A stretch of DNA of 64,000 nt, taken from the NCBI GenBank assembly GCA_004431415.1, contig QPMI01000103.1, forward strand, positions 247,986 through 311,985, read 5' to 3'. The translations under genes were made by a program, and so were the position numbers. The notes beneath the pieces are model-generated. The model did not search any database and was not told where the DNA came from. It saw nothing but the letters and a program-made list of their open reading frames with translations. Positions 7,416-58,188 of this stretch are shown in pieces. The number at the start of each line of letters is the position of its first letter. The stretch's first letter is position 1. The stretch comes from Cyanophora paradoxa CCMP329 (taxonomy: Eukaryota; Plantae; Glaucophyta).

Positions 7416-10400
7416 CTAGAAGGCGTGGTTGACGGGGACGGCGGTCTGCAGCTGGAAGCGCCCCCCGAAGCTGAGCATGCGCTTGAAGCGCGAGTTGGAG
7501 CGCTTGAGGCGCGGGGGCGGGGGCGGCCCCTCCTCCTCCTCCTCCTCCTCGGGGGCCGTCGCCTCGGCCTCGGTCTGGTGCGGGCCGGCCGGGCCCTCGT
7601 CCGCCTCGCTCGAGGGGCGGGAGCCCTCGCCGCCCCCCTCCTCCGCCCCCTCCTCCTCCTGCTGCTGCCCGTGCCCGTGCCCGCGCCCGCGCCGCGCCGA
7701 GTGCGGCGCCCCGTACAGCCCCTCCTGCGCCGGCGTCAGCTCCAGCCGGCCCGGCGGCGCAGGCCAAGGCGGCGCGCGCGCCTGCACCCCCATGCGCAGC
7801 GCCGCGATCTCGTTCAGCGCCGCCGCTGCCGCCTGCGCAGCGTGCGCCGCCTGCGGGCCGCGCGGGAGGTCAGCGGGGGCCCGGGGGGAAGAGGGGCGGG
7901 GAGGGGCGGGCCTGGGCGGCGATGTCCATGAGGTTGGAGCCGTGGCGCTCGCCGCGGGCCGAGCGGGCGGAGCGGAGGCCGCGGGCGGTGCTGGCGCGGG
8001 AGAGGGCCTCGGAGCGCGCCGAGGGCCGGTCCGCGTACGCCTCCCCGCCCCGCGCGCTCCGCGACCGCGCCGTCCTCCGCGACGTCCGCCCACCCCCGCC
8101 CGCCCCGTCCGAGTCCCCGCCTCCGCCCGCCTGGCCCCGCCCCGCCCCTCAGCTCCCGCAGCCGGCGGCGGGAGCGGCGCGCGCACTGGAGGCGGAGCGG
8201 GGGCAGGCTCTTGGCGCCGGAGAGGCTGGCGATGTTGGAGAGGCGGGGCGAGGCGGTGACGATGACGGGCGGGGGCGAGGGCGAGGGCGTCGGGTCCCCG
8301 TCGGGCGCCAGCAGCGGCACCACCACCGTCTGCGCCTTCCCGCCCTTCTCCGCCTCCTCCTCCCCCTGCCGCCCCGTCGGCCCCGGCCCCGGCCCGCACC
8401 CGCGCGGCGCCCCCGGGGGCCGCACCGCTCCTGCCCGCCCGCGCGCGCGCTGCTGTCCGTGGTGGCCCCTGCCGCGCCCCGCGTGCTCTGCGCCGGCCCC
8501 CGGGGGCCGGGGAGGGGCACGCGGCACCTCGTCGTCGTCGGGAGGGGGGAGACGTGGAGGGCGACGGGGGCGATGGGTGGCAGCCTCCGCCCGTTGGTCA
8601 TCCTGCGGGCCCGGGGCCAGCCGCCGGCGCGTCGGGAGGGCGGGGCGGGGCGGGGGCGGGGGCGGGGCGGGGCGGGGCGGGGCGCACGCGACGGGGAACG
8701 CGAAGCGGGCGCTCTTGCCCTCGCGGTCGCTGCGGGCCGTCCGCGCCGAGCGGCTCCCCTTGAGGCTCGTGTTCTGGCTCCGCTCCCCGTCGCTGTTGCT
8801 GCCCCGCTTCCCGCTGCGGCGCGCGCGTCGGGGCGGGGAGCGTTGGGGGCGGGGCGGGGCGGGGCGGGGCGCGGGGGCGGGGACCTGCGCTCGGGGCCTC
8901 GGTGCGCTCGGTGAGGGTCCCCAGGTCGCCCAGCAGCTCCCCCAGGCGGTCCCCCAGCGCCCGCGGCCCCGCGGCGGCAGCCGCCCAGCCCCGCCGGCCC
9001 GCAGGCCCGCGGGCCCCGCGGGGTCGCCGGCGCCGCCCCGGGGAGCGGGGCGGTGGCCTCGGGGGGCGGCGAGGTGGTGCCGCTTCCGGGGCCGAAGGAG
9101 GGGGGCCTCACGGCGAGGACGGGGCCGCCCTCGGGGCGCAGCGGGCTGCGGACCCCCGCGGCCCCCGAAATCGAGTTGGAGCGGGAGGGCCGCTTCGAGC
9201 TCGAGCTGCCCACGCTCTTCGCGTGCGGGTAGTCCGAGAGGGCCGTCTGCGCGGGGCGGTCGCGCGGGGGGCGGGGCCGGGGAGGGGGCGCGCGGGGGGC
9301 CGGCGCACCCTGAGGCCCATCCCGGCGCCGGCGGAGCCGGAGGAGGCGCCGAAGGAGGAGTTGCGGAAGACGGCGGGGCGGGCGCGACCGCTCATGGTGG
9401 GGAATGAGGGGCGGCGGGGCAGGGCCGGGGCCTGCTGCGCCGGGGCCGAGGCGCGGCGGTTGACGTGCACGCCGGCCTCGGCAAGCGCCGCCGCCACCTC
9501 GTCTTCCGAGATAGAGGGCACCGCCACCGCCATCGAGTGCGGCTGGCCCCGCCCCCGCCTAAGCGCGCAGATGGGAGGAGACGGGGAGGGAAGGGGGCCG
9601 GGCACCTTCCAGGTGGACATCTTGCGGGAGGGGGCGACGGAGTGGAGCATGGAGGGGACGCCCCGCGTCATGAACCGCTCCTCCTCCTCGAAGCTAAGGG
9701 GGCCGTCCGTCAGCCGGCGGCGGCTGCGCGGAGGAGCGGAGCGCGGGGCGCGCCTCGTGTTGGAGTAGCGCCGCTCGCGATCCGCGCGGTCGTACTTCTC
9801 GAAGAAGCGCGTCGAGGGCATCCTGCGGGGCGCCCGGGGCTCAGCGGGGCGCGGCGCGGCGGGGCGCAGCAGAGCGGGGTGGGGTGGGGCGGGGCGGACT
9901 TGTTGGCCTGGTCGATGAGGGAGGCGGAGGTCTGCTCGAGGATCTCCTGGTAGACGTACTTGGGGAAGTCGTCCGGATCGTCCCCGAACGGGTTGACGAG
10001 GACCTGCGGCGGGTACGGGTGAGGGGAGCAGGCGGGGGGGGGGGGGGTACGCGAGCGCGCGCGCCTCGTGGATGGTGAGGAGGCCCTCGTAGATGACGCG
10101 GTTGACGAAGAGGAAGATGTACCCGAACACGATCATCGAGATGCTCTGCTTGTTGAAGCCGTCCCCTGCGCCCCCGCGCCCCCGCCCCGCTCGGCCGCCG
10201 GTGCGGGAGGGGCGCGGGGGTGGCCGGGGGTGCGCCCCGGCCCGCCCCGGCCCGCCCCGGCCGGCGCGCAGCGCACCGATGAGGCCGCCGGCGTAGACCA
10301 TGATGAAGAGGACGTGGAGCTTCGTCGCGAAGGTCAGCAGGTGCACGTACGCGTACGGGATCTGCGGTTGCGGCCCCGGCGCCGCGTCAGCGGGGCGGGG

Positions 10401-17503: not shown

Positions 17504-17832
17504 GCCTCCTTAAACCTCGCTCTCTCTTCCTCCCTCCCGGAGCGAGCCGAGCCGCGAGGCCGGCTCCTGCGCCGCCCGCTGCGCGCCTGAGAGCCATCTG
17601 AGACCCCTCCCCCTCCCCTCGTACCCTTCTCGTACCCCGCCGCGCCCCCGTGCCTGCGCCGCCCTGCCGGTACCCCCCTCTTCCTCGTCATCCCCTTGCC
17701 CTCCTCTCCTCCCTGCCCTCTCCATTTTCTCTACCCTGCCCGGCAGCCCTCCGCCCGGCCCCCTCGCCCTTCGAGTTGGAACTGCTGCGCCCGGCCCGCG
17801 CACTCCTGTGGCGTGGCGTTGACTGGACGTCG

Positions 17833-17940
17833 AATGCACAAGCCTGTAAAATGCACAAGCCTGTAAAATGCGCACGGCTGTAAAATGCACAAGCCTGTAA
17901 AATGCACAAGCCTGTAAAATGCGCATGGCTGTAAAATGCA
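17833..17940. repeat. 17-bp minisatellite with a 51-bp higher-order period (a-a-b a-a-b')
   Basis: aatgcacaagcctgtaa x2, aatgcgcacggctgtaa, aatgcacaagcctgtaa x2, aatgcgcatggctgtaa. Confidence 0.9.
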
Positions 17941-18612
17941 TATATATATGGCTGCGACTGGTACGTAAACGATGACACGGAATTGAAAGAATGTGCTGTG
18001 CGTGTCTGCAAAAATACGCCGGCGGCGAGCACTGTGCTGTACGTATTCATGCAAAAAAACGATGACTGATTTTCAGGACTACTGGCCATGGGCTAGTCTA
18101 GTGGGCCATTTCAATGCAACTCGGAGAGGGCCGCGGAAACTTGAAAACCTAACCCCGTAGCTATCTATTGTAACAGTACCAGAAGCCGGCAGGGGCGGCC
18201 ACCGCCACCGCACAATTGCAAGAAAACCAAATCCGATCCAGTCTCTCACGTGCACACAGCCCACCAAGAAAACTCACATTGGCAATCGCCATCAATAAAG
18301 CCACCTCGAGCTCCAAAAACGGTTATATATACGTAATTATATAAAATGAACTTCGCGATCGCTTCTACAGATGTTCCTATGAGAGAAAACGACTAGCTTG
18401 CATTAAATTTGTCTACGGCATATAAAATAATCTATACAGCTTCGCCCGCCGCCTTTCAAAGCCTGTACATGTGGCGGCGATCCCCCTCTGATACAACGGC
18501 AAGTCCCGAGTGGTGAAGTGAACCCAGCCGCCGCCGAGTGATGAACCCAGCCGCCGCCGGGCCGGGGGAGATCCAGATGGCCATGGGGAGGGGCCGGGGG
18601 CCGGGCGGGCGC

Positions 18613-19059
18613 TCAGTCGCCCTTGAGGGTGGCGGGGGTGGCGGGGTAGGAGGCGGGGTAGCCGAGGGCGGGGCGCTCCCCGGGGGCCCCCGCGGGGCCC
18701 TGCACGAGGGCGGCCCCCGCGGCGGCCTGCTGGGGGCCCGGGCCCGAGGCGGCCAGGGCGAGGGCCTCCTGGTCGGCCTGCGGGAGGGCCCCGCCGCCAC
18801 GAACTGCACCTGCACGTCGTGCACCCTGCAGAGGCCGTGAGAGGGGCCGGGGAGAGGCCTGGGGGGGGACAGGGTCGACGCACGAGAACTTGCCGCGGAG
18901 GGAGCCGCCCTCGGCGGCGGCGGCGGCGGCGGCGCGGCGGAGGGAGCCGCCGACGACGGAGGCGAGCGCGGCGCCGTTGCGAAGCGAGCCGCCCAGCACC
19001 GCCGCGCTCGGCTGCCGGCCCCGGCCCCTCAAACCCCGTGCAGCGTCGACGTCGAGGGC

Positions 19060-19097
<38 letters not shown>

Positions 19098-22000
19098 GGG
19101 CGCACGGCGTCGGAGACGAACTCCTTGAGGGACATGCGGGTGGAGCCCTCCTTGGGGGCCGACACGGCCCCGCTCGTCCACCCCGTCGATCAGGTACGCG
19201 ATCTGAGGCCGCGTCACCGCGTCGGCGGCGGCTGGCCCGGGACGCGGGCGGGGCGGGGCGGGGAGGGGCCGGGGCGGGCGGGCCTCGCCGTGGGTGATGG
19301 AGTCGACCCCCTCGATCTCCTTGGTGGGGTCCACCCGCAGCCCGATCGTCTTCTTGATCGCCAGCAGCGTCACCTGCCGCCCGGCCCGGCCCGGCCCGGC
19401 CGCGCCCTCAAGATCAGCGGGGCCCGCGCGCGGCGGTGCGCATGCTCGACGGGAGGAGACAGCGAATTCGAAGGCGGCGGGGCGGGGCGCACGACGGCGA
19501 TGGAGATGGAGAGAGCGGCGACGACGAGGACGGCGAGCAGCTGCACCCCGAGGAGCCGCCCGTTCCCTGCCCGCCCCGCGCCACACCCCGCCTCAGGCCT
19601 CGGGCTCCGGGGGAAGCGATGGAGGGGGCGGCCGCGGGTGGGGACCGTAGAAAGCGCCGTCGGGGCCCAGCGGGTTCACTTTCTTCGTCGCGAAGAGGCC
19701 TGCGGGACACGGCCTCGGCGTCAGGCGCAGCGGCGAGGGCGGCGGCGGGGGCGGGGGCGGGCGCGTGCCGGTGCAGAGGGGCCCGACGACGCCGCCGACG
19801 CCGTGGCAGGAGAAGACGTCGAGGGTGTCGTCGATGAGGGTCAGCCGCTGCCGCAGCTTGATCGCGTAGAACGAGCACGCCGCCCCGATCTGCCCCGCCC
19901 CGCCCCGCCCAAGCGCTCAATCCCGAGAGGACCGGAGCCGGAGACGGTCGACTGGAGCTGGCATGGAGTGCTGCTCGCGATCGCGATCGGGGCGATTGCG
20001 GGCGCACGATGCCGATGAGGAAGGCGGCCCAGAGCTCGACGAAGCCCGAGTTGGGGGTCGAGACGATGAGGCCGACGACCTGCCGCGCCCCGGCGACCCC
20101 GGCTGAGCTGCGAGGGGCGGGGGAGAGGATCCGGAGTGTGTGGGAGGGCGGGGCGGGGAGGGCGCGCCATGCCGACGGAGGCCTGGGAGGCGGAGATCTT
20201 GCGGTCGTGGAGGTACTCGAGGGCCATCCACGTCGCCAGGCCCGTCGCCGCCGAGAGCTGCGTGTTCGCCACCGCCACCGCCGCCACGTCTGCCCGGCGC
20301 GGCGATCGCGAGGCCCAGCGTCGACGTCAGCGCGCGGGCTCTGAGGCCGCTCGGGTTTATTGGGCTCGCCGGGCACGGGCGGGCACCGTCGGAGAGGTAG
20401 CCGTTGCCGCCGTTGAAGCCGAACCAGCCGAACCAGAGGAGGCAGGCGCCGAGGACGATGAGGGAGACGTTGTGCGGCACCAGCGGCTTTTCGAACGCCT
20501 TGCGCCTGCACGCGCGCGCCCCCCCGCCGCCCCTCAAACCCTGAAACGAGACTGAAATTCTTCGAATTCGCCGCGGTGCGGCCCGCATTGAAGTGCCCCG
20601 CACCGCCCGATGATGACGGCGGAGGCAAGGGCAGCCATGCCGGCCTGCGCGGCCCGGCGGGAATCAAATATTAATTCCAGTGAAATTCGGAGGGGGCGGG
20701 GCGGGCGGGGCGTACGGTGAGGTGGACGACGAGGCCGCCGCCGAAGTCGACGACGCCGAGCTCACGGAGCCAGCCCTTCCAGGCGCACACCACCGAGGGG
20801 CCCTCCTTGGCGTATGCCACCCTGCACCCCGCCGCCGCCCACACCCAGTGCGCCACGATGTCTGCCCGCACCCGCCGTCGACGTCACTCGCCGGCGGCGA
20901 GCTGCGCGCTAGGAGCGGGCGGGGGCGCGGGGCTCGCCGTAGCAGAAGGTGCTCCAGAGAATGATGAAGGCGAGGTAGGCTGCGGGTGGATGGGGCGCGC
21001 GGTCAGGGGGCGCAGCGCAGGGCGGCCGGGCCGCGGGCAATCGCGGGGGCGGATCCCCGGACCGCGGAAGGACATGCGACCGACGACGGCGCCGGAAATG
21101 AGCGCCGGTGTGATGATCGCTGCGCGGCGCGACGGTCAACGTTGCGACTCGAAAAATGCACCGCAATCCCAGTGAACGATTTTGCACCGAACATCATCTG
21201 ATAGGTCATGAAGAGCGCGTGGGGGATCTGGGGGGGCGGTTAGCTGCAGCTGCAGCAGCAGGCCTGGGCCGCGGTCCCATGGCCAGCGGCCCGGCCCGGC
21301 GGGGCGGCACAGCGCGGGGCGGGGTGCTGGGCGGACGTTCTCTGCGTACTGCGGGCAGCAAAAAGAGTGAGGGCATCAACGAGAGCGGACCGGAGGGGCC
21401 GGTGCGGGGCGGGCGCACGTCGGGGTTGGACTCGCCGCCGACGTCCTTCAGGCCGCCCCAGCGCAGGTCCCCGTAGATGCGCGAGCCCCCGTCCGGCGCG
21501 TACGTCACGCTGTACCCGAACAGGAACCACTGGATCGTGATCGCCTGCGCCGGGAGGAGGGGAGGAGGGGCGGGGGGGGGGGGGGAGGGGGAGGGGGGGG
21601 GGGCGTTGTTCTGATTATTTAATGTCCTGCGATATCCAGCACGCGCACGCAGCGACCGCGAAGCTGGACGCGCACCGGGATCGCCACCACAGACATCCTG
21701 CGCGCGCGAGGGACCCGCAGATGTGATTAGAATTTGTATTATATAATCACGACGTCGACTCGGCGAGCTCGAGCTCGAGCTCGAGGCGCCCGCCCGCGGC
21801 AAATGGACGGGCGGGTCGCGATCGGCCGGGGCCGGTTGGGGCTCACATGAGCGTGTTGATGCTGTTGATGCTGTTCACGAAGCCTGGGAGCGGCCGCGCG
21901 CGTCACGCGGGGAGCGGCTTGAATGCGGGGGGCATGGGCGCGTGTACCCCCGTAGAAGAAGGCGAGGGCCTTCGAGTTCGAGGGGCGGGGCGGGGGCGGC

Positions 22001-25000
22001 GCCGGGGCCGGGGGCCGGGCCGGTCAGCGGCCTGGGGCGGCGGATCGATATCCCGCGCTGAGCTCGAGGCGCACCGGAGTCATCACAAAGACCTGCACGG
22101 GCCGGGGGAGGCGGCGAGCACGATCGCGAGGTCAGCGGGCCGGGCGTGCACGTGCCAGCCCCGTGGCGCCGGCCGGGTTGGCGGGCGGGGCCAGGCTCAC
22201 GAGGAGGGCGCAGAGCAGCATCCACGCTGTGTCGCCCGAAGCCACCGAGCAATTCCTCGATTTATGCTTGGCCTCACGTGCTTTTTCTTCGCCGAAAAGC
22301 TCGCATGAATTATATACAGATCACGAAGTATTGTTTCTCTACGTATACCTACTTCTATGACGTGATCTATTCTGCCACGCGTACGACGGCTACTGCCACT
22401 CGGCGGGCTAGTTTCTATTCTATTATTAATTCGCGACTATATTGCTGCGTGCATATATTGTGTTTGGCAGTCGCGGGGAGCACGGTTTTGCGGCGCAAAA
22501 CCGGAGAGAACCTTCCACCGTGTTGAGATCACGGTTTATCAGTTCTCTCAAGCCGAGGATACCGGCGGATGCTTCCCCAGGGGTCCACATCAAGTGCTTT
22601 TTTCTGACGAGCTACTGCGAGTCTACAATTGCTGTACCCCTCTGGGTTAGTGCCCGATTTCTTGAGGGGCATCTGGCCCAGGCCTCTCACGTGGTCGGCC
22701 GCAGCCTTCACGTGATTCGGAGGCGGGGTACAGCGACCGCTGGTAAGTACAGCGGTTTGAGACGGAGGCAGGAAATAGTTGGTGGGCCGGCGGGCTTCGC
22801 CCGCCGTGCACAAACCACACCACTCACGGACTGTCCTCGCCTCTTCAATATTAATGGAGTACAGCACAGGAAAGCAGTGCGGATCGAGCTTTGTCGGTCA
22901 TTCGACGAGCTTAACGCTTTCTCGATCTCTTAATTACGTAAGAGCCTGCTATTCTCCATGTGCAATTACAGGGCTTGAGGTCGACGTTATATGAAATTCG
23001 GATCTGGGCGTCTCCGCCGCCAGCTGCAGGCTTCTAGCCGCAGATCTAGATCCGGTAAGGCAAGCTAGTTCGACGTCGACTTGCCACTATTCCTTATTAT
23101 TCCTCTCGGGTTTGCAGTGCGATCGCTTTGGGCATCAATCGATGCCATCCTAGCGATTTCAATCGCGTCGATCGCAATCGCGGGGTTGATGCCCGCAAGC
23201 CATGTCGAATGTATCAGCCCGATTTCGATTTTTGTCTCGAGCTCTTCTCTGGTCGCGAGTCTTCCGTGGCCATATGCATTCTGCAGCCTGCGGCTTGCTT
23301 CGAATTCGCAGCTCACGGCTTATAATTGCGAAGGACTCGTGCGATTAATCCACCCGATCCAGCTCATGAATTATCTGAGCTTATAATTAAAGATCCGGAT
23401 CCGGATGCAGAGAATTACTCCGACAGCCGTGTTCAACGGCGGGGAGCTCAATCGCGAGGGCTGGACGTCGACATCGCGTGTTCGTGTATCCGGTTCGCGC
23501 CCTAGGCCTAGAGCTAGTCGGTGGCCATGGCACTACAGATTGGAGACTCCGGGTTCCGGTCTCCGTGTCGATTTTTAATTATAGGCCCGTATACGTAGGC
23601 GTTCTGCAGCGAAAGGCTGCAGGCTCCAGCTCGACTGCGAACCTCTTATGGCCAGGCTTAGGCCCCTGAGGGCTCCGAGCTCGACTGGGCATATGCATGA
23701 GCCTGGTTAAATATATATAGCCATTAATGGGCCCCGGTTCTCGAAACGTTAACTATTGCAAGTTAATTGCAATTGCAAGTCCAGCGCCGACAGCGCGACT
23801 TGTAATTTGACCCTGACATGGCAGGTCTGTCTCACGATCAGCTGCAGAGCTCGATTCTGCCAGCTGCAGTACACGTGAACGTATACTTCACTGTATACGA
23901 CGAGGTGTGGGAGGGTGGGTGCGCGAGGCGATTCCTCGCACAGATCGTAGTAAAAGATTGAAGAACAAGGCGCGCCGCCCGCGAGCGGGGCGGGCGGCGC
24001 GCCTCAGACGGACTGGCGCTCTCAGGAGCGCCTTGCGTCAGTGATGCAATCAATAGCAGGCGGTACCCGTGGCGGCGTGTCGGACGGGTACGTCTCGCGT
24101 TCATAATTAATATTTTGTTTTCTCGTGCGCGATCACGATCGCAGCCGAGCGCCGGCCGCGGCCGCGGTTACGATTCCGGGCGCGCGCCGATAGCTGAGCT
24201 TGTCGGCTGTTTTGCACTGACGGCTTGCACAAATCTTCGTCTACGCTTACGCGCATACGACGTTTTATGCTTGGCCTCACGTGCTTTTTCTTCGCCGAAA
24301 AGCTCGCATGAATTATATACAGATCACGAAGTATTGTTTCTCTACGTATACCTACTTCTATGACGTGATCTATTCTGCCACGCGTACGACGGCTACTGCC
24401 ACTCGGCGGGCTAGTTTCTATTCTATTATTAATTCGCGACTATATTGCTGCGTGCATATATTGTGTTTGGCAGTCGCGGGGAGCACGGTTTTGCGGCGCA
24501 AAACCGGAGAGAACCTTCCACCGTGCTGCGCCGGGGCCGGGGGCCGGGCCGGTCAGCGGCCTGGGGCGGCGGATCGATATCCCGCGCTGAGCTCGAGGCG
24601 CACCGGAGTCATCACAAAGACCTGCACGGGCCGGGGGAGGCGGCGAGCACGATCGCGAGGTCAGCGGGCCGGGCGTGCACGTGCCAGCCCCGTGGCGCCG
24701 GCCGGGTTGGCGGGCGGGGCCGGGCTCACGAGGAGGGCGCAGAGCAGCATCCACGCTGTGTCGCCCGAAGCCACCGAGCAATTCCTCGAGTAGAAGCCTG
24801 CCCCCGCCGGGCCCGCCCGGGCAGGGCCGTCACCCGTCAGAGGCAAGGGGCGCCGTCCGACGGTCGCGATCGCTGGGCGCGCGCGATATGCATGCGGCGC
24901 CGGCGCCGGCGCCGACGTCATGATCACCTCGCGCGCAGACGCAGGAGCCGTCCTCGTTCTTCAGGAAGCTCCCGTCCGCGCCCTTCTCCGTCCGCCCTTC

Positions 25001-25392
25001 ATGGCACTCCGCTGCGCGTGCGCCATGCATATGCTCATCCGTCATGATCAGCTCGAGCTCATGGTTTGCAAGGTTTGCAACATAGGTATCTGCGATATTT
25101 CGACCGTGCGGCAATATATTTAATAGCTATCCGGTCCGGCCCGGGGCCTCGTCGGAGGCTCGTCCGGCCGTGGTCCGGCCCGCAGCCCGCGATCGATATC
25201 GATCGACATCATGACCATGATCATCTTTAAATTTAGCTATAGCGATGGTGCCTATGCCGCGCACGTATACGCGCGCGCGTACGGATATATACTTCTAGCC
25301 TGCGATCGATCGCGAAGACAGATCTAGAGCAGCGCACCGGACACGCACAGGCCCGCGCCCAGAATCAAAGTGGCAACCAGTAACGCTCTCAT
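18613..25392 (-). CDS. AMT: Ammonium transporter (Amt/Mep family), about 20+ exons, interrupted by an insertion with duplication of exon 3 (partial) and exon 4
   Basis: Exons 25392-25338 (MRALLVATLILGAGLCVS), 25011-24928, 24797-24730 (SGDTAWMLLCALL), 24621-24604 (VFVMTP), 21969-21948 (ALAFFYG), then IQWFLFGYS, YQMMF, ITPALISGAVVGR, AHWVW, DFGGGLVVH, PHN, LLWFGWFGFNGG, DDTLDVFSCHGVGG, GLRV..EIEGVD..HGE. Twin His and Phe gate retained. Confidence 0.93.
21999..22260. repeat. Host duplication A, left copy (262 bp; AMT intron/exon sequence)
   Basis: Matches 24528-24789 except one visible substitution (22193 A vs 24722 G). Confidence 0.95.
22261..22522. repeat. Element-end duplication B, left copy (262 bp)
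   Basis: tttatgcttgg...ccttccaccgtg, apparently identical to 24264-24525. Confidence 0.95.
22814..24104 (-). pseudogene. Decayed KDZ (Kyakuja/Dileera)-like transposase remnant
   Basis: In order on the minus strand: RRHGYRLL..APES (24077-24018, cf. CxHG..GE/ES), PTLPHLVVYS (~23920-23890, cf. LP..xYD), DTFDMACGH (23215-23189, cf. DxFHxxxxH), LDPHCFPVLYSINIEEARTVREWCG (22888-22814, cf. NP..FP.L..NxxxAEQxNxWxG). Key residues substituted; matched by eye only. Confidence 0.4.
24264..24525. repeat. Element-end B, right copy (262 bp)
   Basis: Identical by eye to 22261-22522. Confidence 0.95.
24528..24789. repeat. Host duplication A, right copy (262 bp), continuous with the AMT 5' exons
   Basis: Continues directly into the exon-3 acceptor (ctg at 24798-24800). 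Confidence 0.95.
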
Positions 25393-25537
25393 TCTGCAGC
25401 TGCTTCGAATTCGAATTCGAGTTCCCCTTACGATGTCTCGTACGCGTGCGAATATATACGCCGGCGACGCTGTGGAGGCCGCTGTGGAGCGTACGTACGT
25501 ATACGTACAGGAGAAAGCTCGAGCTGTACTGCGGTAC

Positions 25538-25582
25538 AAGCAGGGGGGGCTCCGCCCCCCCCGCACCCCCCCCGCTTGCTAG
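25538..25582 (+). other. G7-CTCCG-C8-GCA-C8 hairpin followed by CTAG (Helitron-3'-end-like or REP-like)
   Basis: aagcagggggggctccgccccccccgcaccccccccgcttgctag. Confidence 0.35.
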
Positions 25583-26819
25583 CTGGCCAATCGGAATTGC
25601 TGGGTTTAATTGACCAATCACCAAGTCGCCCGAGTTTTAGACTGTAGCTTTTTGACTGGACTCGCCGTAGTAAGCGATTTCAACTCAACTGGGTATACTG
25701 GTACTTGAGCAAGTGTTCAAACTTGTATATATATCACCATGACCGGGTACACGAAAGCCCAATACTATGCAAGCTGGCAAAGCAGTGTTTTTTTCGACTG
25801 AATCTATCACTCAGACAATTACACCATTGGTGGGCAGTTTTGCTGGCAGGATTTTCCTTTTTTTTGCCTCTTCAAGCTCGCAGCTGCCGTAGTTCGGATG
25901 ATCCCAAATGTGTTCAGAACTTACCAGTGGCAGCCTCCGGCTTCCGAGTTTGAAATTCCCAGCCTGGGCCGGTAGTGAAGCGAAGAGCTAGTAATATAAA
26001 CTAGTTATACAGTTACATGAGGAGGTGCTGCCGCAGGAGGCGCCCGGACGGAACTGCCATCAGCGGAAAGGCGTGGCCGCGGACGCCGGAAAGAGGCGAG
26101 ATGGTGACGGCGAACGAAGCAATGCTGGCTATACTATGATAGGTAGCAGAACAAACTTTGTTCGCTCATTTCGAAATGATGACAAGCTCGGCAATTGCAA
26201 ATTCCAAAAACAAATTTGCAAATTCGCGATATTTCAATATCACGAATTGCAATATGTCGACGTCCCAAATTCAATATCGGCCTGCTATAAACATTCCTGC
26301 CCTTGGGGCAGTGCAGCCTCGGGTCACTGGGGTGGCGCCGGCTTGAAGGCTATAGAGCTAGCAGGCTATATAGCTAGCCGCTACAAAGCTGGCAGGCCAG
26401 CCGCACTGCGGCAGGCAGGCCTACCCTGGCGCAGCCATATAATTCTATAAACGATAGCTATTGCTGGCCAACAGGTTCGGCTCACCAAACCTTTGGAAGT
26501 TACCGGGTACATAAATTGATTGATCTTGGAAGAGCGATTGTTAAATAAGCAAACCGTTGCGATTGCGATTGATAATCAAGCATTGATAACCGGCGACAGA
26601 CAACATGACCGTGAAAAGAGAAGCCTCTTGGTCACCCACCGACCAGGTGACCCGAGGCTGACCGCCGTATACGTACCGCCGGCGGCGCCCCGGGCGGCCG
26701 GGCCGGGTACCCGGTCGGAGGTTGCAAAGTCAACCTTGCAATTTCATGCGCATATGTTGTATAATTATGTATACGTTTGCACATATCCATATGTTGTCTG
26801 CGCATGCGGGGTACCTCGA

Positions 26820-27790
26820 GCTCCGCCGCCGTGTTCGGCGCCGGCTGTCAGTACTTTGCTCGGTAGCTCCCCCGTCGTGGCTCCTCGGGGGCCTCTTCGT
26901 CGTCGTCGTTCGCTGGGTTCCGGCTCCGGGTCAGATTTCTCGCCGGGCTTACCTTCTCCTGGCTCTGCTCCTGCAGCTGGGCCCTCAGCTCCGGGACCGG
27001 CTTCCCCGATCTCCTCCCGGACTCGTGGTCGTACCCGTCGCCGGCTTGCCAAGCCTGCGGCTCCTTCTACTCCCCCCCGGCGGTTTGCCGGGCCGGACCC
27101 TCCGGCCTTTGTTCTTGATACCGGACTGCCGCCTTTGCCTTCGTCTTCTGCTTCGCTGGTCGCGATCGTATCCCGCCGGCGGCGGCGTACTTCTTCGTCT
27201 TCTAGTTTAGTTCGGTCTGGTTCGGATTCTGATCGTAGTGTTGATGCTAGAGTTAGTTTCAATACTAGCTATAGTCCTCGTGCTCGACCTGTTGTTCGCC
27301 GTCGTTTGCAGTTCGATATCGATTGCCCGCCTCGACCCCGGCCGGCTTTAGTGATTCCTTTGACTGTCCTTTTGCCTGCTCTTGATCCGCCTGCTCCGCC
27401 TCCTGTGTCCTCCTCGACCTCGTGCCGTAGCTCTGCCCTTTCGCATCGTCCTGCTTCGCCTCCGGGATCCGCCTCCATGTCGTCTTGTTGTTCCTCTTAC
27501 TTGTCTTCTTCCTGTTATTTATCTTTCTCAATTTTGTCCCCCGCTTCTTAGTGATATCGATGTAATTCCTTCTGATATTGATGGTATCTCTAGCTCTGGC
27601 TTTTCTTCGTGTCAGTTATCCTCTGTCCCTAGATCTGCTCGATTTATCGTCTCTTCTCGCTATCGATCTGTCTCGAGCTCTGTGTCTTTCGAATTCCTTT
27701 TTTATTGTCGATTTTGGCTCTTTGTCTTATCTTTCTTCGTGCTCTTGTCTTAGTTATTTTGCTTTTTTGTCTTTCTGCCCCCTGGGCAGC
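26820..27790 (+). mobile_element. Pyrimidine-skewed, intronless decayed ORF-like tract; probable retroelement/TE remnant
   Basis: Ser/Pro/Arg-rich ORF (26520-27551) with mostly NNT codons, unlike host GC3. Strong T/C strand skew, no introns, no recognisable domain. Confidence 0.35.
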
Positions 27791-32000: not shown

Positions 32001-35000
32001 CGCGCCGCTCGATCGGGCGGCATCGATATCGATATCGCCAGCATCCTTTCCTTAAGCTTTGGCAATTGCAACTTTAATTGGCCGCTGCTGATCCTGAGAC
32101 TCGCGCAGTGGGGCGCGGTCGGCGTGCCCCGCCCCGAGGACGCGTTCCGGGCCGTCTCGGCGGCGTTGCGCATCCGCGCCGGCTTCCGCGACGAGGGCCT
32201 CGGCCCCGTCTCCGTCGGCGTCGCCACGGGACCGTGCGCCCGTTCGATTCGATTTGATGCACAATTGCGCGCCCGCTGTCTTGCGCGTCGGCCCCCGCGC
32301 TCACTGCTGCACGAAGCGTCTACACGGGCGTGGTGGGCGACGAGGCCGCGCGGCGCGCCCTCTTCCTCTGCCTCGGCCGCCCCGTCTCCTCCGCCCTCCG
32401 GTCCGCGACGCCGCGCCGCGCCCCGCGCCGCGCCGCGCCGCTGCGTCCCGCCTCGTGACCGAGGGCGCGGGGGCGCCGAGGCGGCAGGCTTGCGCTGGCG
32501 GCGGCCGGCTCCATCTACATCGACACGGCCACGTGCGAGCGCGTCGCGGAGGACTTCGTTATCGAGGCCGCCAACTTCCCCTTCCGCGGCGAGGTGCGCC
32601 TTAACTCTCGCCGGGAGGCTGCGGGGAGGCTTGGGCTGAGGGGGCGAGCGCGTGCGCAGGGGGCGGCGGGGCAGGCGAAGCTGAAGGCGCCGGCGTGCTT
32701 CCGGGTCCTCTCCGCCCTGCGCCAGCCCCGCGAGACGGCCGTCGCCGCCGGCCGCGCCCGCCACCGCGCCGCTCGCGCTCGGCCGCCGGCTCGGCGCGCG
32801 GCTCGGCGCGGTCGGCGCGGCGGCGCTCCGAGCGCGCCCTCGTCGACCTCGCCGACCTCGAGTCCGAGGCGGCGGGGAGCGGGGCCGGCACGGGCTCTGG
32901 CTCCGGCTCGGGCGGGCTCGCCGGGGGCCCCGATCCCGAGGCGGACTCGGTGGCGAGCAGCAGGGCGCTCACGCGGGAGGAGGCGGCGGGCCGGCTGGCG
33001 GCGGCCGCCGCGTCGGGCGAGAGCCTCGTGTACGGGCGGCGCGAGGCGAGGGCGCAGCTTGTGGAGCTGCTCACGGCCGCCCGCTGCGGCGAGTACCTCC
33101 GCGGCGGCGCCGCGAGCGGGCACACGCTCCTGGTCGAGGGCGACCGCGGCTCGGGCAAGAGCACGCTCGGTGCGCAAGACGACCTCGCCTCCCCTTCTTC
33201 CCACAGGGGGCCCGTTGGCTGGCCCGCGATCGGTCTGAAGGCCGCCGCGCGCAGTGGCAGAGGCGGAGCGGCTGTGCGAGATCGTCGACCTGCCGTTCCT
33301 GAGCCTGCAGCCCGACCCTAAAGAGGTGCCCGGGCCGGGGGCGGGGCGCCCTGCTGCCGGCCGCCCCCTGACACCGGAGCCTCGCGGCAGATGTACCCCT
33401 ACGAGGCGGTGCGGCTGCTGCTGCGGGGCATCATCCTCCCGGGCCGGCGCGGGAGCGCGGCCTCGCACGCCGTCGAGCTCGATCGCGAGACGGTCGTGGA
33501 GCCCTCGCCCCGCGCCGAGAGCGCCACGCCCGGGCCGGAGCCGCCGGCCAGCGCGAGCGCGAGCGAGCGGCGGCAGGCGGCGGCAGCGCTGGGCGCCTGG
33601 CTGCAGTCGGCGGCCTCGGGCCCCGCCTCGCCGCTCGGAGGCTCGACGCGCTCGGAGCCGCAGGGGGCGGGGGAGGGCGGGTCGGAGTGGAGCAGCCCGC
33701 GGGGCTCGGCTGAGGTGCGGGCCTTTCGCGGGAGGCGCCCGGGAGCCCGTCGAGCCCGCGGGACGGCGGCTTCCTCTTCAGCATGCTGGCCCCCTCGGCC
33801 TTCGATCTGGGGCCCCGCGCCGCCGGCGCCCCCGAGCCGCCGGCGGGGCCCGCCCCGCGGCCCCGCTCCGTCTCTCCCGCCGAGAGCTCGAGCTACGGCT
33901 CGCCGGCGACGGCCGCCGGCGCCGCGGTGGCGGCCGCCGCCGATCGGGAGCTGTACGACATCGAGGAGCCCGAGTCGGAGTCGCCGGAGAGCTCGCGGTC
34001 GCCCCCGCGGGCCCGCCCCGGGGGGCGCGGGAGCGCGGGCCCGCGGCTCTCGGCCTTCGGGGACGGGCGCCTCTTCCTGGACGCCCTCGCCTTCCTCAAG
34101 CAGGTCGACCCGCAGCTCGCCTCCGGCTACAACGCCCAGGCCCGCCCCGCCCCGCCCCGCCCCGCCCCGCCCCGCCCCGCCCGCCCCGCCCGCGCGCGAG
34201 GCGGCCGCGCAGGTGCTGGTGCGGCTGCTGTGCGACGGCGTCTTCTTCCCCTCGACGACGGCGGCGGCGGGGAGAGCTCCAGCCCGGGGGGAGCCCGCAG
34301 CTCTCCTCCGCCGGCGGCTCCCGCGCGCGCCGGCGCTCGCGGGCGCGTAGCGACGCGCCCTCACTCGGGAGCCGCGGCTCGAGCGACGCGCGCACGGCCG
34401 CCGGCGCCCTCGTCGACTTTTCGATGGCCGCCTCCTCCGAGGGCTACCGCGTCTTCTCCTTCCTCTGCCGCCTCCTCGAGGTCCGCCCCCGAGCGCGCCG
34501 TGCCCCGCCGCGGCCCGCCCCGCGGGGCCGCTGAGCGGGGCGCTTGCAGGGGGTGGCGCGGAGCTCGGCGGCGCTGGTGATCATCGACGACTTCTGCGAC
34601 CTCGACGCCGCCTCCCAGAAGTGCCTCGCCTTCGTCGCCCAGACCGGGTCGGCACCCGCCCGGCCCCCGAGCTGGCCGGGGCCCCGCCCCCGCCGAGCCC
34701 GATCGCCGCGCAGGCGCGTGTGCATGCTGGCGACCTCGCGCAGGGTGCCCGCCTCGACCGTCTCCCTCGAGTTCAACATGGTGACCCCGGCCCTCTCTAC
34801 GACTGGCGAACTCGTTGCACTGACACACTTCTCTACGCGGACCAGCTGCGGCAGAGCCGCCAGACGCGCCACGCCGAGCTCCGCCCCTGGTCCTCCCTCG
34901 GTGCCCCCCGACCGCACCCGCCCCGCTTGCGGGCTTCAGCGCGCGCTGCCGACCGACGCGGCCCGCGGCGCCGCAGACGACGTGGCGGGTTTCGTGAGCT

Positions 35001-39814: not shown

Positions 39815-40175
39815 CGGCGGCGGGGCTCGCCGGGCGGGGCGGATCCAGAGGCGCGGCGGGCGGCGGCGGCCGCGGGGCTCGCCGTGCGGGGCGGAGGCGC
39901 GGTGGGCGGCGGCGCGGCGCGGCTCGCCGGGCGAGGCGGAGGCGCGGCGGGCGGCGGCGCGGCTCGCCGGGCGAGGCGGAGGCGCGGCGTGCGGCGGCAC
40001 GGCGCGCCGCACGGGAAGCAGGCGCGGCGGGCGGCGGAGCGGCGCGCCGGGCAGGGCGGACGCGCGGCGGGCGGCGGCGGGGCTCGCCGGGCGGGGCGGA
40101 GGCCGGCGGGCGGCGGCGCGGCTCGCCGGGCGGGACGGCGGCGCGGCTCGCCGGGCGGGGCGGAGGCGCGGCGGG
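39815..40175. repeat. ~40-bp GC-rich minisatellite, about 9 degenerate copies, in a TE-like intergenic block (39030-40800)
   Basis: Unit approximately ggcggaggcgcggcgggcggcggcgcggctcgccgggcgR. Confidence 0.8.
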
Positions 40176-40823
40176 AGGCACGTCTACGCCTAACGAGCAT
40201 TAGCTGCAGTCTGCAGATGCTGTTTTTGTTGCATTAGGCCACATGGCCACCTCGCACATCCCAAGACGCCGTGACGAGCAGGCCTAGGGGGCGGCGGCGA
40301 GTCGAACACCTAGAACTTAGCAACCTCACTGATCATGATTGACCTGCAAGTCCTCTTCCGCGCCCGGTCCCACGAGCTCGCCGAGTCGATTCGCGAGCCC
40401 GGCCGACCGTCCCAACCGCAGGGGTTCGCGCATGCGCAGCTCAGCGGCTGCAGGCTCCAAAGAGTTAGCACTATTTCTATCTCGGCCCGGCTAACCTGAC
40501 CTTTCCTGCTCAACCGTTAGAGGTCCTTCCCCTTCAACAGGGGCAGTGCAACTGCAGAGTCCCTGTTCCGTTCATTTATCACCTTTCGAATTTGTGAAAC
40601 ATCATTGCAATTGAACTTCGGAATCGGGTTCCCATATTAGAAGAGTATTTATATGTCTTTTACCAAATCTAGATTGTTCTTGGGCAGGACAGATTTTCGC
40701 ATAGCAGTTGCAAATTGTTTGGGGCATCCTCAGTACCAGATTGATTCCAGATTGCTTTCCCGGGTCCGACATGTACACGACAGATTTTCACTGAGTCAAG
40801 CCATGCTCTTAATTTAACTTAAT

Positions 40824-55300: not shown

Positions 55301-58188
55301 CGCCCTCCGCGCCGCCCTCGCCCGCCTCGTGCCTTCTACTCCCCTTCCCCCCCCCCCCCCCCCCCCCCCCTGCCCTCCCCTCTGAGCGCCCTGGCGGCAG
55401 GCGGAGGGCCAGGCTGCGATCCGCGTGGAGATGGCCGAGGCCGCCGACGCCGCCGCCCGCGCCCGCGCCGACGCCGTCCGCCCTCCCTCGTCCCCGCCCC
55501 CGCCCCGCCCCGCTTAGGCCTCGCCGGCAGGAGGAGGGGAGGCGCGGGCGCGGGAGGCCGCCGTCAACGGCCTCCGCGCCGCCATCCTCGAGCAGGCGCC
55601 TCCCCCGCCCCTCCCTCCTCCCTGCCGCCCCCTCCTCCTCTCAGCGCCCCTGCAGGTGGAGGCGGAGGCGGAGGCGCGCGCTGCGGGCGGGGAGCGGCTG
55701 GCGGCGGAGGCGCGGCGGCTGGTGGAGGAGGAGGCGGGGGCGCGCCGCGCCGCCCTCGACGCCATCCAGGGCGACCTCCTACGCCTCGTCCGCCCCTCCC
55801 CTGCTTGCTCGCCGCTCCTCGGCTCTCCTCCTGACGGGGCGGGCCGGGGGCGCAGGGGGCGGCGCTGGCGGCGCTGCCACCGCCGACGGCGACCCCGCCC
55901 TCCTCGGCCCCCTCCTCGCCCCAGCGCGGCGCCCCGCACCACCACGAGGCCCGCAAGGCGCGCCCCCTCCGTCCCCTTTCCCCGCTCCCCCCCTCCCCGC
56001 GTGACCCTGTGCCCAGCCGGAGGACACGCGGGCGCGGCTCAAGGCCTGCGAGGCCCTCCTCAAGGCCCACTCCAGCGAGCTCGAGAGTGCGCCGTACCCC
56101 CGCCCGCCCGACCCCGTACCCCGCCTCCGTGACGCCCTGCCCGTCAGCGCACGAGTACCTCATCCGCGCCCAGGCCGCCCAGGTACCCCCCGCGGGTCCC
56201 TTGAACCCCCCGCCCCGCCCCCCCCCCCACCCCGGCCAAAACGCGTACCCCAGGTGGAGCACTGCGCGACGACGAAGGCGCTGGAGAACCTCCGCACCGC
56301 CACCGCCGAGCAGGTAGCCCCCCCCCCGCCTTGCTTCTGGGCGGTGTACCTTCTGCACCCACTCACCGCCCGGTCCCCCCCCGGCAGATGGCGGGTGTGA
56401 ACGCGCGGGCGCAAGCGGCGGAGGAGAGGGTACGGCAGCTCGCCTCCGGTACCGCCCCCGCTCCCGCCGCGTACCCGGTACCCCATCCCCGACGCTCGGC
56501 CGTACCCCAGCGGTGGTGGCGGACCAGGAGGGCATGCGCCGCTCTTTCGCAGAGTCCCTCGACGCCCTTCGGTGCGCCCGTACCCCGCCGGCCGGCACGG
56601 CGAGGCGGGGTACGCGAGAGAGGCTGACCGGGTCCGGCCGGGCCGGGCAGGTTCGACGTGGAGGGGGCCGTGGGGCGGCGGGGTGGCCCGCCCGCCGAGC
56701 CGGGGCCCGCCCCAGGATCCCGCTCGCCCCCTCCGGGCCAGGGCTTCGCCGCCCGCGCCGCCGGTGCCCGCGCCGGCCCGCCCCTCCCTGCCGCCGCCGC
56801 CCCCTCTGAGCTGGGCGCCGGCGGGCAGCGCCTGAGCGGGAGGGCGGGGGCGCGCTGTACACGTGCGGCCCGCTGGCGGCGACGCTGGCGGGGCTGCTCT
56901 CCCCCGAGCGGCAGGCCGCGCCGCCCCCCGCGAGCGCCAACGCGAGCCCTCGCCGCGGGGCCTCCGCCCCAGCACCTCCGTCTCTGCCCCGCGCCCCGTC
57001 TCCCTTCCATCCGCCCCGGCGCCCCCGGCCCCGGCCCTGGACCCGCCTCCGTCAACCCGTACTCCGCCCACGTCGCCCCTCCCCCGTCCCCGACCTCCTC
57101 CCCTCGTCCCCGCCGCGCCCTCCTCCCCCCGGGGCCGGCGGCGGCCCCGGCGGGGTGCCCTCCTCGGCGGCAGCGGCGGCGGCCCTCTCGCCCTTTGCGG
57201 AGCGCCACAGTGCGCCGGGCCGGCCGGCCCCGCCCCGGCCCCGCCCCGCCCTGCTCTGACGGGGCCGGCCGGGGGCGCAGCGACGGCGCTCGCGGCGCTG
57301 CACGCGGCCGTGGAGACGCTCGACGCCTACGTCCGCTACGCGCCCCACGAGCAGGCCCGCCCCTTGCTCCAGCCCGCCGCTCTGCCCCTCCGCCCCAGCC
57401 GCCCAACGCGCCCCCGCAGGCGGCGCGGGCGCCCTCGGGTCCCGTCTCTTCTGTCGCCACTGCCCTCTGCTCCTCCCTCCAGGCCCGCCCCCTCCCGCTC
57501 CTTCCCCTTCTCGTTCCCTGACGCGCCCGTACCCCAGGCGGTGGTGACGGAGGGGGTGCGCGCCGGCGTCCTCCTGCGCCCCACGCAGCACCCCTGGGAG
57601 TTCCTCGAGGCCCTCGTCATCCGTACCCCCCCGCGCCCTCGAATTGCGTCCCCGCCCGAGCCGCGCGCCCAGGGGAGCCCGGCTCGGCGATGGCGGAGGC
57701 GGTGGGGTACATCAACCGGACGGCGCCCCCGCCGCAGAGGTGCGCGGCGAGGCGCTGCCGCCGGCCACGGGCGGGGCCGACGGGGCGGGGCGGGGCAGCG
57801 CGGAGGACGAGGCGGCCCTGTCCGACGCCAAGTTCGCCGCCTTCGTCCGCGCCGCCCTCAAGTGCGCCCCGCCCCGCCCCCCCGCGAGACCTTTCCCGCC
57901 TGAGGCGCCGGGCGGCGCGCAGCAAGCGGGCGCTGCGCGAGTGGCTCGGCGCCCTCGCCGCCTACATGGTCGACCGCGCCCACAAGCGCGGCGCCGACGG
58001 CGGGTGCGCCCCCGCCCCGCCCCCCTCGAGCTAGACTGCCGCCTGACTCGGGGGGCAGGGCGACGCCGCGCGCCGGCTTCGTGCAGGAGCTGCTGGAGGC
58101 CGTCGGGCCCCTCGCCGCCCTCGACTTCGCGTACCCCGTCGAGGCCGCCGCCGGGGCCCCCGCCCCCGCCCCGGGGCCCGCCCCTTGA
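52323..58188 (+). CDS. Long coiled-coil protein with a C-terminal RUN-like domain, multi-exon
   Basis: Heptad exons throughout. C-terminus AVVTEGVR..HPWEFLE, AKFAAFVRAALN/KRALREWLGAL, ELLEAVGPLAALDF follows the RUN block order. TGA at 58186-58188. Confidence 0.7.

Follow-up and report, generated by a model that had tools for sequence, protein, structure and literature searches.

A nested repeat of the order A-B-X-B-A in the Cyanophora genome appears, on balance, to be a recent, non-autonomous and non-coding retroelement that entered single-copy host DNA in one event of target-primed reverse transcription, with the equality in length of its two repeats, A and B, being coincidental. The arrangement lies within a window of 64,000 nt, which is the whole stretch of DNA that was analysed.

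Structure of the insertion

Repeat searches and base-by-base comparison confirmed the two 262 bp duplications that had originally been described. The A copies (21999-22260 and 24528-24789) differ by one mismatch (22193 A vs 24722 G), and the B copies (22261-22522 and 24264-24525) have zero mismatches. When one mismatch per edge was tolerated, A extended to at most 265 bp and B to at most 268 bp, so the two lengths are equal within ~3 nt. The GC content was 0.76 for A, 0.47 for B and 0.55 for X, with 0.70 for the whole window, in which repeat searches detected no further copies of A, B or X. Repeats of such length and similarity cannot have arisen by chance, and the nested A(B..B)A order is the signature of an insertion as opposed to a tandem assembly error. 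The identity of the B copies, together with the single base by which the A copies differ, supports a single, recent insertion event, and this part of the original prediction stands. No host gene was recognised at A, the flanks having neither clear codon periodicity nor a Pfam domain. The features of the region are as follows, with strand given where one applies.

21998..22003, palindromic hexamer GGCGCC at the left host boundary (L|A), cut as G^GCGCC on the top and GGCGC^C on the bottom strand; putative second-strand nick
21999..22260, A1, left copy of the host target-site duplication; single-copy, with flank contigs matching the window
22261..24263, minus strand (probable sense), complete unit of the repeat family, non-coding and 2,003 bp long, delimited by family contig ends
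22261..22522, minus strand, B1, terminal 262 bp of the full unit, from repeat comparison
22483..22503, perfect 10-bp hairpin adjoining the main hairpin, from inverted-repeat and folding analysis
22504..22549, main hairpin, with arms at 22504-22522 and 22530-22549 and a 7-nt loop, TTGAGAT, at 22523-22529
24264..24525, minus strand, B2, second partial copy of the unit end; its first nucleotide is that of B1 and its last is the end of a hairpin arm
24526..24527, fuzzy junction CT within GCTG, where the host has GCGG and the donor GTTG
24528..24789, A2, right copy of the host duplication, from repeat comparison
24785..24790, palindromic hexamer CTCGAG at the right host boundary (A|R), cut as CTCGA^G; putative first nick and priming site

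The CT at the fuzzy junction is either filler or a mosaic of 4-nt imperfect microhomology; junction microhomology is 0-4 nt at most and imperfect.

Support for the assembled structure and the repeat family

The family was traced in public Logan short-read contigs from four runs, consisting of X14 and three 2024 runs. These contigs also bear on whether the arrangement is an artefact, with one copy of A or B absent from the organism, which is considered very unlikely. The assembly is of PacBio reads, with short-read polishing by majority rule (PMC6704402), no junction-spanning contig was present among the contigs listed, so that support from reads is partial, and in the three 2024 runs contigs continue unbroken through both the A1/A2 mismatch position and the A|R boundary, all as an artefact would allow. 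However, the arrangement is nested and not tandem, the A copies differ by one base, and the structure is just 2.8 kb in a PacBio assembly (PMC6704402), a length that long reads are expected to span. Furthermore, all four boundaries coincide with meaningful features, and the X14 contigs break at the A1/A2 mismatch (22192|22193) and at 24760, 30 nt (k-1) before the A|R boundary, exactly where breaks are expected because the two A copies continue differently. Per-bin and per-place contig depths disagree on the insert versus the empty site in the 2024 runs.

Host flank contigs were identical to the window and at single-copy depth (28-72) in the four runs. By contig depth, B and X belong to a family of ~6-13 copies, with B and the start of X at 9-13x the flank depth and the end of X at 6-7x. 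In every run, family contigs stop at 24263 or begin at 24261, and they cross the B|X junction (22522/22523) unbroken. This indicates that the unit ends are the start of B and the end of X, which makes B2 an additional, partial copy of the unit end and not an LTR. CACGGT, which had been proposed as a fixed end, is thus not one. Likewise, the proposal that B|X is a circle junction ("TIR, 7 nt, TIR") does not hold, as it is crossed by family contigs of 9-13x depth and the hairpin is internal and contiguous in all of them. A variant head-to-tail junction with a period of 1,792 was present at 2-3 copies. The terminal redundancy of the insert is supported as the product of a donor copied over more than one unit length, for ~1.13 rounds. 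Copying begins twice at one base (22261 and 24264), and that end is present at 9-13 copies versus 6-7 for the other, with uneven depth. The minus strand is probably the sense strand of the unit, which would put the RNA 3' end on the 22261 side; this assignment is based on contig depths, which are uneven along the unit and show no smooth fall.

Both unit ends are conserved among copies, a pattern that would suit a DNA element too and that counts against a retroelement.

The main hairpin had a folding z-score of -4.9, with no shuffled sequence folding as well, and contains an inverted repeat of 6+8 bp around a 7-nt spacer. B2 terminates exactly at its apex, on the edge of a hairpin arm, and such edges comprise 1.15% of unit positions. 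The length of B is the distance from the unit end to the apex of this strong hairpin. The hairpin was also considered as a possible core site of a tyrosine recombinase (arms plus 7-bp spacer, with CACCG as in Crypton); family contigs put the unit ends elsewhere.

Coding capacity and element class

None of ten ORFs in the insert had a Pfam match better than E = 0.09, which leaves a reading of the insert as a fossil KDZ transposase unsupported. An Rfam search of the insert, down to E = 5, detected no hammerhead or other ribozyme and no other family, and a tRNA search was likewise negative. The ORF across B|X had no homologue in the protein collection searched, no record of a junction-spanning ORF was found, and metagenome and viral contigs searched for exact 32-mers gave no match.

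The B-X-B order resembles LTR-body-LTR, and the 6+8-bp inverted repeat flanks a 7-nt spacer as the joined ends of a transposon might. Identity as an LTR or TRIM element with B as the LTR and an unrelated host duplication, or as a DNA transposon with ends meeting at B|X, is nevertheless largely refuted and highly improbable. B begins with TTTATG and finishes with CCGTG, without TG..CA, and the flanking duplication is 262 bp, not 4-6 bp. B1 is followed by TTGAGATCACGG, with no TGG-type primer site seen, and no tRNA gene lies nearby; GCGCATACGACGT, which precedes B2, is not purine-rich and contains no purine tract. The depth of B is approximately that of the start of X, in one unbroken high-depth contig, and B is not twice as abundant. 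With respect to DDE elements and insertion sequences, the sequences at 22261 and 24263, the two ends of the unit, do not form inverted repeats. The original view that the element is neither LTR nor DDE was upheld: it has no TG..CA, its target duplication is not a short one of fixed length, and it lacks coding capacity.

Helitrons have a 5' TC and a 3' CTRR, carry a hairpin at 10-20 nt from the latter end, insert between A and T, and produce no target duplication. This class was rejected, as the unit has TTTATG and GACGT (or their complements) at its ends, the distance from its end to the hairpin is 262 nt and a long duplication is present. Replitrons were also dropped, as their ends differ and none has been detected in glaucophytes. 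Of the features of Penelope-like elements, a partial tandem forming a pseudo-LTR is present, with B2 as the truncated head-to-tail second copy, while the hammerhead ribozyme of canonical clades was not found in the pseudo-LTR (Rfam, E = 5). Counting against a retroelement, searches found no autonomous partner, no gene for a reverse transcriptase and no shared 3' end, and a poly(A) tail is absent, the end being just ...CATAAA(ACG).

Host boundaries and mechanism of insertion

Both boundaries of A lie in palindromic hexamers, at matching offsets and on opposite strands, with a joint chance of ~0.003 as judged post hoc; the GGCGCC hexamer sits within a G-rich tract (21982-22019). From their sequence, the boundaries look as would two endonuclease nicks. 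The 262-bp duplication, with CTCGA^G and GGCGC^C on opposite strands, corresponds to the geometry of nicks leaving a 3' overhang, in the one copy examined.

Under target-primed reverse transcription, an element-encoded endonuclease would make a nick at CTCGA^G on the top strand. The 3' end released there, ...CGA, would pair with two of the three last RNA bases and prime cDNA over the whole RNA, giving B1, the hairpin and X. On reaching the 5' end of the RNA, the cDNA, with ...CGT as its last bases, would use a 3-nt microhomology to jump to the 3' end of another RNA copy, where synthesis would restart at the same nucleotide and give B2. After 262 nt, copying would reach the apex of the stable hairpin, whose free arm may re-pair and expel the cDNA end. 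The cDNA would then switch to the target 262 bp upstream, recopy A and rejoin the chromosome. The bottom strand would be cut at GGCGC^C, a nick stagger of 262 bp, and fill-in would yield A-B-X-B-A. Two of these steps have published counterparts: the R2 reverse transcriptase jumps from full-length cDNA to further RNA copies (PMC11371274), and a jump of cDNA to upstream target before second-strand cleavage has been modelled (PMC6895275). The length of B would be set by element anatomy and that of A by the position of the second nick, and their equality is most likely a coincidence. The exact match of 262 with 262 has a chance of ~0.3-1% per single insertion, which counts against coincidence.

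A route without reverse transcriptase, in which the equal lengths are also coincidental, is unlikely. It would start from a break with nicks 262 bp apart, repaired off a circular or tandem 2,003-bp unit for 1.13 turns by rolling-circle or microhomology-mediated break-induced replication, with a stall at the extruded hairpin and a switch to the other host end. Such copy choice between DNA templates would agree with the conservation of both unit ends in the family, the recurrence of head-to-tail junctions, a stop point at the hairpin, junctions with just 0-4 nt of imperfect microhomology and the lack of poly(A). However, the copy-number excess on the 3' side fits 5' truncation, and the two symmetric palindromic nick sites suggest an endonuclease of the element.

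The original prediction took the equal lengths to indicate one coupled event. In its developed form, a circular or multimeric donor would undergo a single strand exchange with the target, creating a four-way junction, which a motor or polymerase would drive equally along both until the hairpin, with resolution and fill-in duplicating equal lengths. Agreement of A and B to within ~3 nt at 262 bp, at a chance of ~0.3-1% per event, is what this predicts; four-way junctions have been proposed for the integration of LINEs with a restriction-like endonuclease (PMC6895275), and the hairpin is a possible stop signal. However, spontaneous branch migration is impossible for lack of homology between A and B. 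A purely measured distance would not predict that the far host boundary lies in a palindromic hexamer with an offset mirroring that of the first nick, as it does here, and the case was singled out because its lengths match. No support for forced equality was found, and the equal lengths can be had without coupling, B being the distance to the hairpin apex and A lying between two palindromic-hexamer sites; coupling is regarded as unlikely. Were this improbable reading true, redundancy and host duplication would always be equal, revealing an undescribed resolution pathway in retroelement or circular-DNA integration.

Comparison with known systems

The closest parallel to the host duplication, on the target-primed reading, is provided by the Dualen LINEs of Chlamydomonas reinhardtii. 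Dualen target duplications have a median of 900 bp and are ascribed to widely staggered nicks (PMC9977147). The present insertion, also a single one, likewise lies between very long copies of host DNA, of 262 bp here versus the median of 900 bp (PMC9977147). Unlike Dualen, the element here is non-coding, and no gene for a Dualen-type reverse transcriptase, restriction-like endonuclease or AP endonuclease was found; its host is a glaucophyte, and the text available mentions no partial tandems for Dualen insertions (PMC9977147). For the R9 LINE of rotifers, which is rDNA-specific, a target duplication of 126 bp is given as a single value (as cited in PMC9977147 and PMC6895275), whereas the target here is single-copy DNA.

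The partial tandem has its counterpart in Penelope-like elements, in which a truncated copy head-to-tail beside a full copy mimics an LTR, as here (PMC8557442, PMC11167929). Multicopy head-to-tail arrays and non-autonomous members exist in this group, and hammerhead ribozymes are absent from its Naiad and Chlamys clades, as they are here (PMC8557442, PMC11167929). Both partial tandems and head-to-tail insertions are on record for non-autonomous Chlamys elements, one of which, MRC1, was formerly misclassified as an LTR element (PMC8557442); neither glaucophytes nor Cyanophora are mentioned in that paper (PMC8557442). The likeness is one of architecture, and unlike in Penelope-like elements no 30-40 bp tail was recognised here. 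In a Penelope-like element of the green anole, reverse transcription starts inside a stem-loop, whereas the stem-loop here marks where copying stops.

The R2 reverse transcriptase forms head-to-tail products by jumping from an RNA end to the 3' end of another RNA (PMC11371274), a step that would have been taken here too. As in the open four-way junction model, a cDNA jump upstream before second-strand cleavage would displace the DNA between the nicks (PMC6895275). R2 differs in being site-specific and in staggering its nicks by a few bp, as against the long stagger and hairpin exit proposed here (PMC11371274, PMC6895275).

Two leads arise from this insertion, namely an endonuclease that would nick one base inside the ends of palindromic hexamers and a hairpin that would make the copying enzyme quit its template. 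Such inserts resemble LTR elements or circle junctions, with a risk of mis-annotation. Should some cultures truly lack the insertion, the element would be one that is still active in a laboratory model alga. Long host duplication and partial tandem are both already known from algal (Chlamydomonas) retroelements, and both signatures have so far been published for green algae and animals. Here, one clean and very young glaucophyte insertion shows the two together, a target duplication of hundreds of bp and a pseudo-LTR.

Nested direct repeats at the insertion site

Repeat search and base-by-base comparison confirmed the nested direct repeats of the original prediction, in which two copies of a host segment (A) bracket an insert whose body (X) lies between two direct repeats (B):

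21999-22260 and 24528-24789: host segment A, left copy (A1) and right copy (A2), 262 bp with one mismatch
22261-22522 and 24264-24525: insert-end repeat B, left copy (B1) and right copy (B2), 262 bp, identical

With one mismatch tolerated at each edge the repeats grew by 2-3 nt, to lengths of 262-265 (A) and 262-268 (B), and no further copy of A, B or X was found within the window. GC content was host-like in A (0.76), 0.47 in B, 0.55 in X and 0.70 for the whole window. The sole difference between A1 and A2 was A at 22193 versus G at 24722; if G is ancestral, the A1 change may be a copying error during insertion and not later divergence.

Three features argue for A-B-X-B-A being a real structure: the nesting of the repeats, the mismatch between A1 and A2, and a small insert size, which the long reads of the assembly presumably exceed. 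The assembly was built from PacBio data and comprises 99.94 Mb in 712 contigs with 67.6% GC, probably haploid (PMC6704402). Public short-read (Logan) contigs were available for four runs (k = 31). In the 2019 run, one contig stops at 22192, directly ahead of the mismatch, and another starts at 24760, 30 nt ahead of the boundary between A and the right flank (A|R), which is exactly the pattern predicted by two copies of A with different continuations. In the three 2024 runs both positions were traversed unbroken, with G at the mismatch position, as expected from an empty site consisting of left flank, single A and right flank (L-A-R); graph simplification could equally produce this pattern, and the depth figures conflict. 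None of the contigs listed for the four runs spans a junction. Where contigs continue through A2 into the right flank, the mismatched base is G.

Repeat family and its unit

Copy numbers were expressed relative to the host flanks, which were identical to the window in the contigs and had a depth of 28-72 by run. Pieces of B and X reached 135-650 and included sequence variants, indicating that the insert is a member of a repeat family. B with the first ~300 nt of X was present at about 9-13 copies and the last ~340 nt of X at about 6-7, while the middle of the insert (about 22823-23414) was divergent or private to the local copy. High-depth contigs terminated at 24263 and started at 24261 in every run, and position 22522/22523 was crossed without a break by contigs 22466-22817, 22496-22660 and 22261-22822. 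The unit is therefore 22261-24263 (2,003 bp), with the B|X junction internal to it and B2 an extra piece. The inverted repeat at B|X, previously read as the joined ends of a circle, is thus an internal hairpin of the unit:

22504-22522 and 22530-22549: hairpin arms, loop TTGAGAT

A joint from 24290 to 22499 occurred in all runs at 2-3 copies, which indicates other loci with head-to-tail units; these have a period of 1,792, owing to a 211-bp deletion in B. At 22641-22719 (79 nt), most family copies (depth 465-680) have a different 40-nt sequence instead, so the local copy represents a minor subfamily. Relative to the family majority, the local B shows a single substitution and two indels, of 1 nt and 6 nt. 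The strongest hairpin within X is a perfect 15-bp inverted repeat at 23968-24004 (7-nt spacer), with GGCGCGCC in both arms.

No Pfam domain was found in the insert ORFs, and no tRNA, hammerhead or other Rfam family in the insert. An LTR element was rejected because the insert lacks TG..CA ends, a purine tract and a short target duplication, a Helitron because its characteristic ends are missing, and a Replitron because none has been detected in glaucophytes. The insert does not resemble a DDE transposon either, since the actual ends of its unit do not form inverted repeats.

A second repeat family adjoins the insertion site. Beyond the single-copy host flank on the right, from 25564-25800 onward (low GC to about 28000), contig depth rises to about 400-480, roughly 6-8 copies; the 343-aa ORF at 26520-27551 had no Pfam match. 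Tandem repeats were observed at 17816-17951 (17-bp AATGCACAAGCCTGTAA, about 8 units) and 39853-40179 (40-45 bp, about 7 units).

Junctions and boundaries

B1 and B2 begin at the same base, the T of TTTATGC, immediately ahead of which family contigs have CGT. The other unit end reads ...ACGACGT, and a single CGT is present at the head-to-tail junction, amounting to a 3-nt overlap; at A1|B1, CGA from the host occupies its place. B2 terminates in ...ACCGTG, at the final base of the hairpin 5' arm, and hairpin-arm edges of this kind make up only 1.15% of unit positions. The 141-nt hairpin region has a fold z of -4.9 (0/200 shuffles fold as well), and in a loose end of a divergent subfamily among the Logan contigs the apical CCGTG/CACGG stem is preserved although the loop differs. 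The right junction, GCTG (host GCGG, donor GTTG), is fuzzy, of the kind found where copying ends.

In the empty-site sequence the boundaries read G^GCGCC (L|A) and CTCGA^G (A|R), so that each, read on the strand that would supply its 3' end, corresponds to cleavage behind the fifth base of a palindromic hexamer. The per-position chance of such a match is 0.054 in these flanks and the joint chance ~0.003 for a pattern noticed post hoc. Palindromic hexamers are strongly enriched across the window (1-64000; 2,543 versus 1,594 expected from shuffles), with the excess peaking where GC is low, as in the islands X (90 versus 28) and 24790-26789 (120 versus 32). The L|A boundary lies inside a G-rich tract. 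Such G4-type (GGGGC)n or (GCCCC)n tracts number 146 and account for 7.5% of the window, with examples at 8618-8687, 21982-22019, 34133-34210 and 63669-63748. Uninterrupted runs of G or of C, 30-45 nt long, occur at about 643-690, 19057-19095 and 55349-55375.

Proposed route of insertion

Two features, a higher copy number toward 22261 and the identical start points of B1 and B2, suggest that the RNA 3' end lies on the 22261 side and hence that the sense strand is minus. The mechanism that we infer as most likely has six steps. A nick at CTCGA^G would be followed by priming with two of three terminal bases paired and by synthesis of full-length cDNA, which would then jump to a second RNA copy via the 3-nt microhomology. 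Copying would continue for 262 nt, as far as the hairpin apex, where the free arm could re-pair with its partner and free the cDNA end. This end would then switch to the target at a site 262 bp upstream, A would be copied again and the second strand would be cut at GGCGC^C. Hairpin-promoted template switching is known in retroviral reverse transcriptases.

The equal lengths of A and B had been attributed to one coupled event, and for any one insertion the probability of agreement to within ~3 nt is roughly 0.3-1% (estimated from the 2,003-nt unit), a figure that applies here to an insertion singled out because its lengths match. A true 1:1 coupling is nevertheless improbable. B extends from the unit end to the hairpin apex, both of them landmarks of the element, and A is bounded by matching nick sites, so each length is separately explained; moreover, A and B share no homology, so the junction cannot migrate spontaneously between them. 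Of the earlier interpretation, coupling and the circle junction are not supported, and a single event, the copying of more than one unit and the exclusion of LTR and DDE elements are.

Comparison with known insertion systems

The insertion belongs to already known kinds of insertion signature, and the probability that it holds something new is small. It offers two useful leads, namely nick sites in palindromic hexamers and a proposed exit of the cDNA at the hairpin. For the main steps of the proposed route there are published precedents. Target duplications of Dualen LINEs have a median of 900 bp (PMC9977147). Partial tandems and head-to-tail arrays are made by Penelope-like and non-autonomous Chlamys elements, and MRC1 was formerly mistaken for an LTR element (PMC8557442). 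R2 proteins that have finished a cDNA jump onto further RNA molecules (PMC11371274). In a published model for restriction-like-endonuclease LINEs, the cDNA jumps to upstream target DNA ahead of second-strand cleavage, and this jump displaces the DNA between the nicks (PMC6895275).
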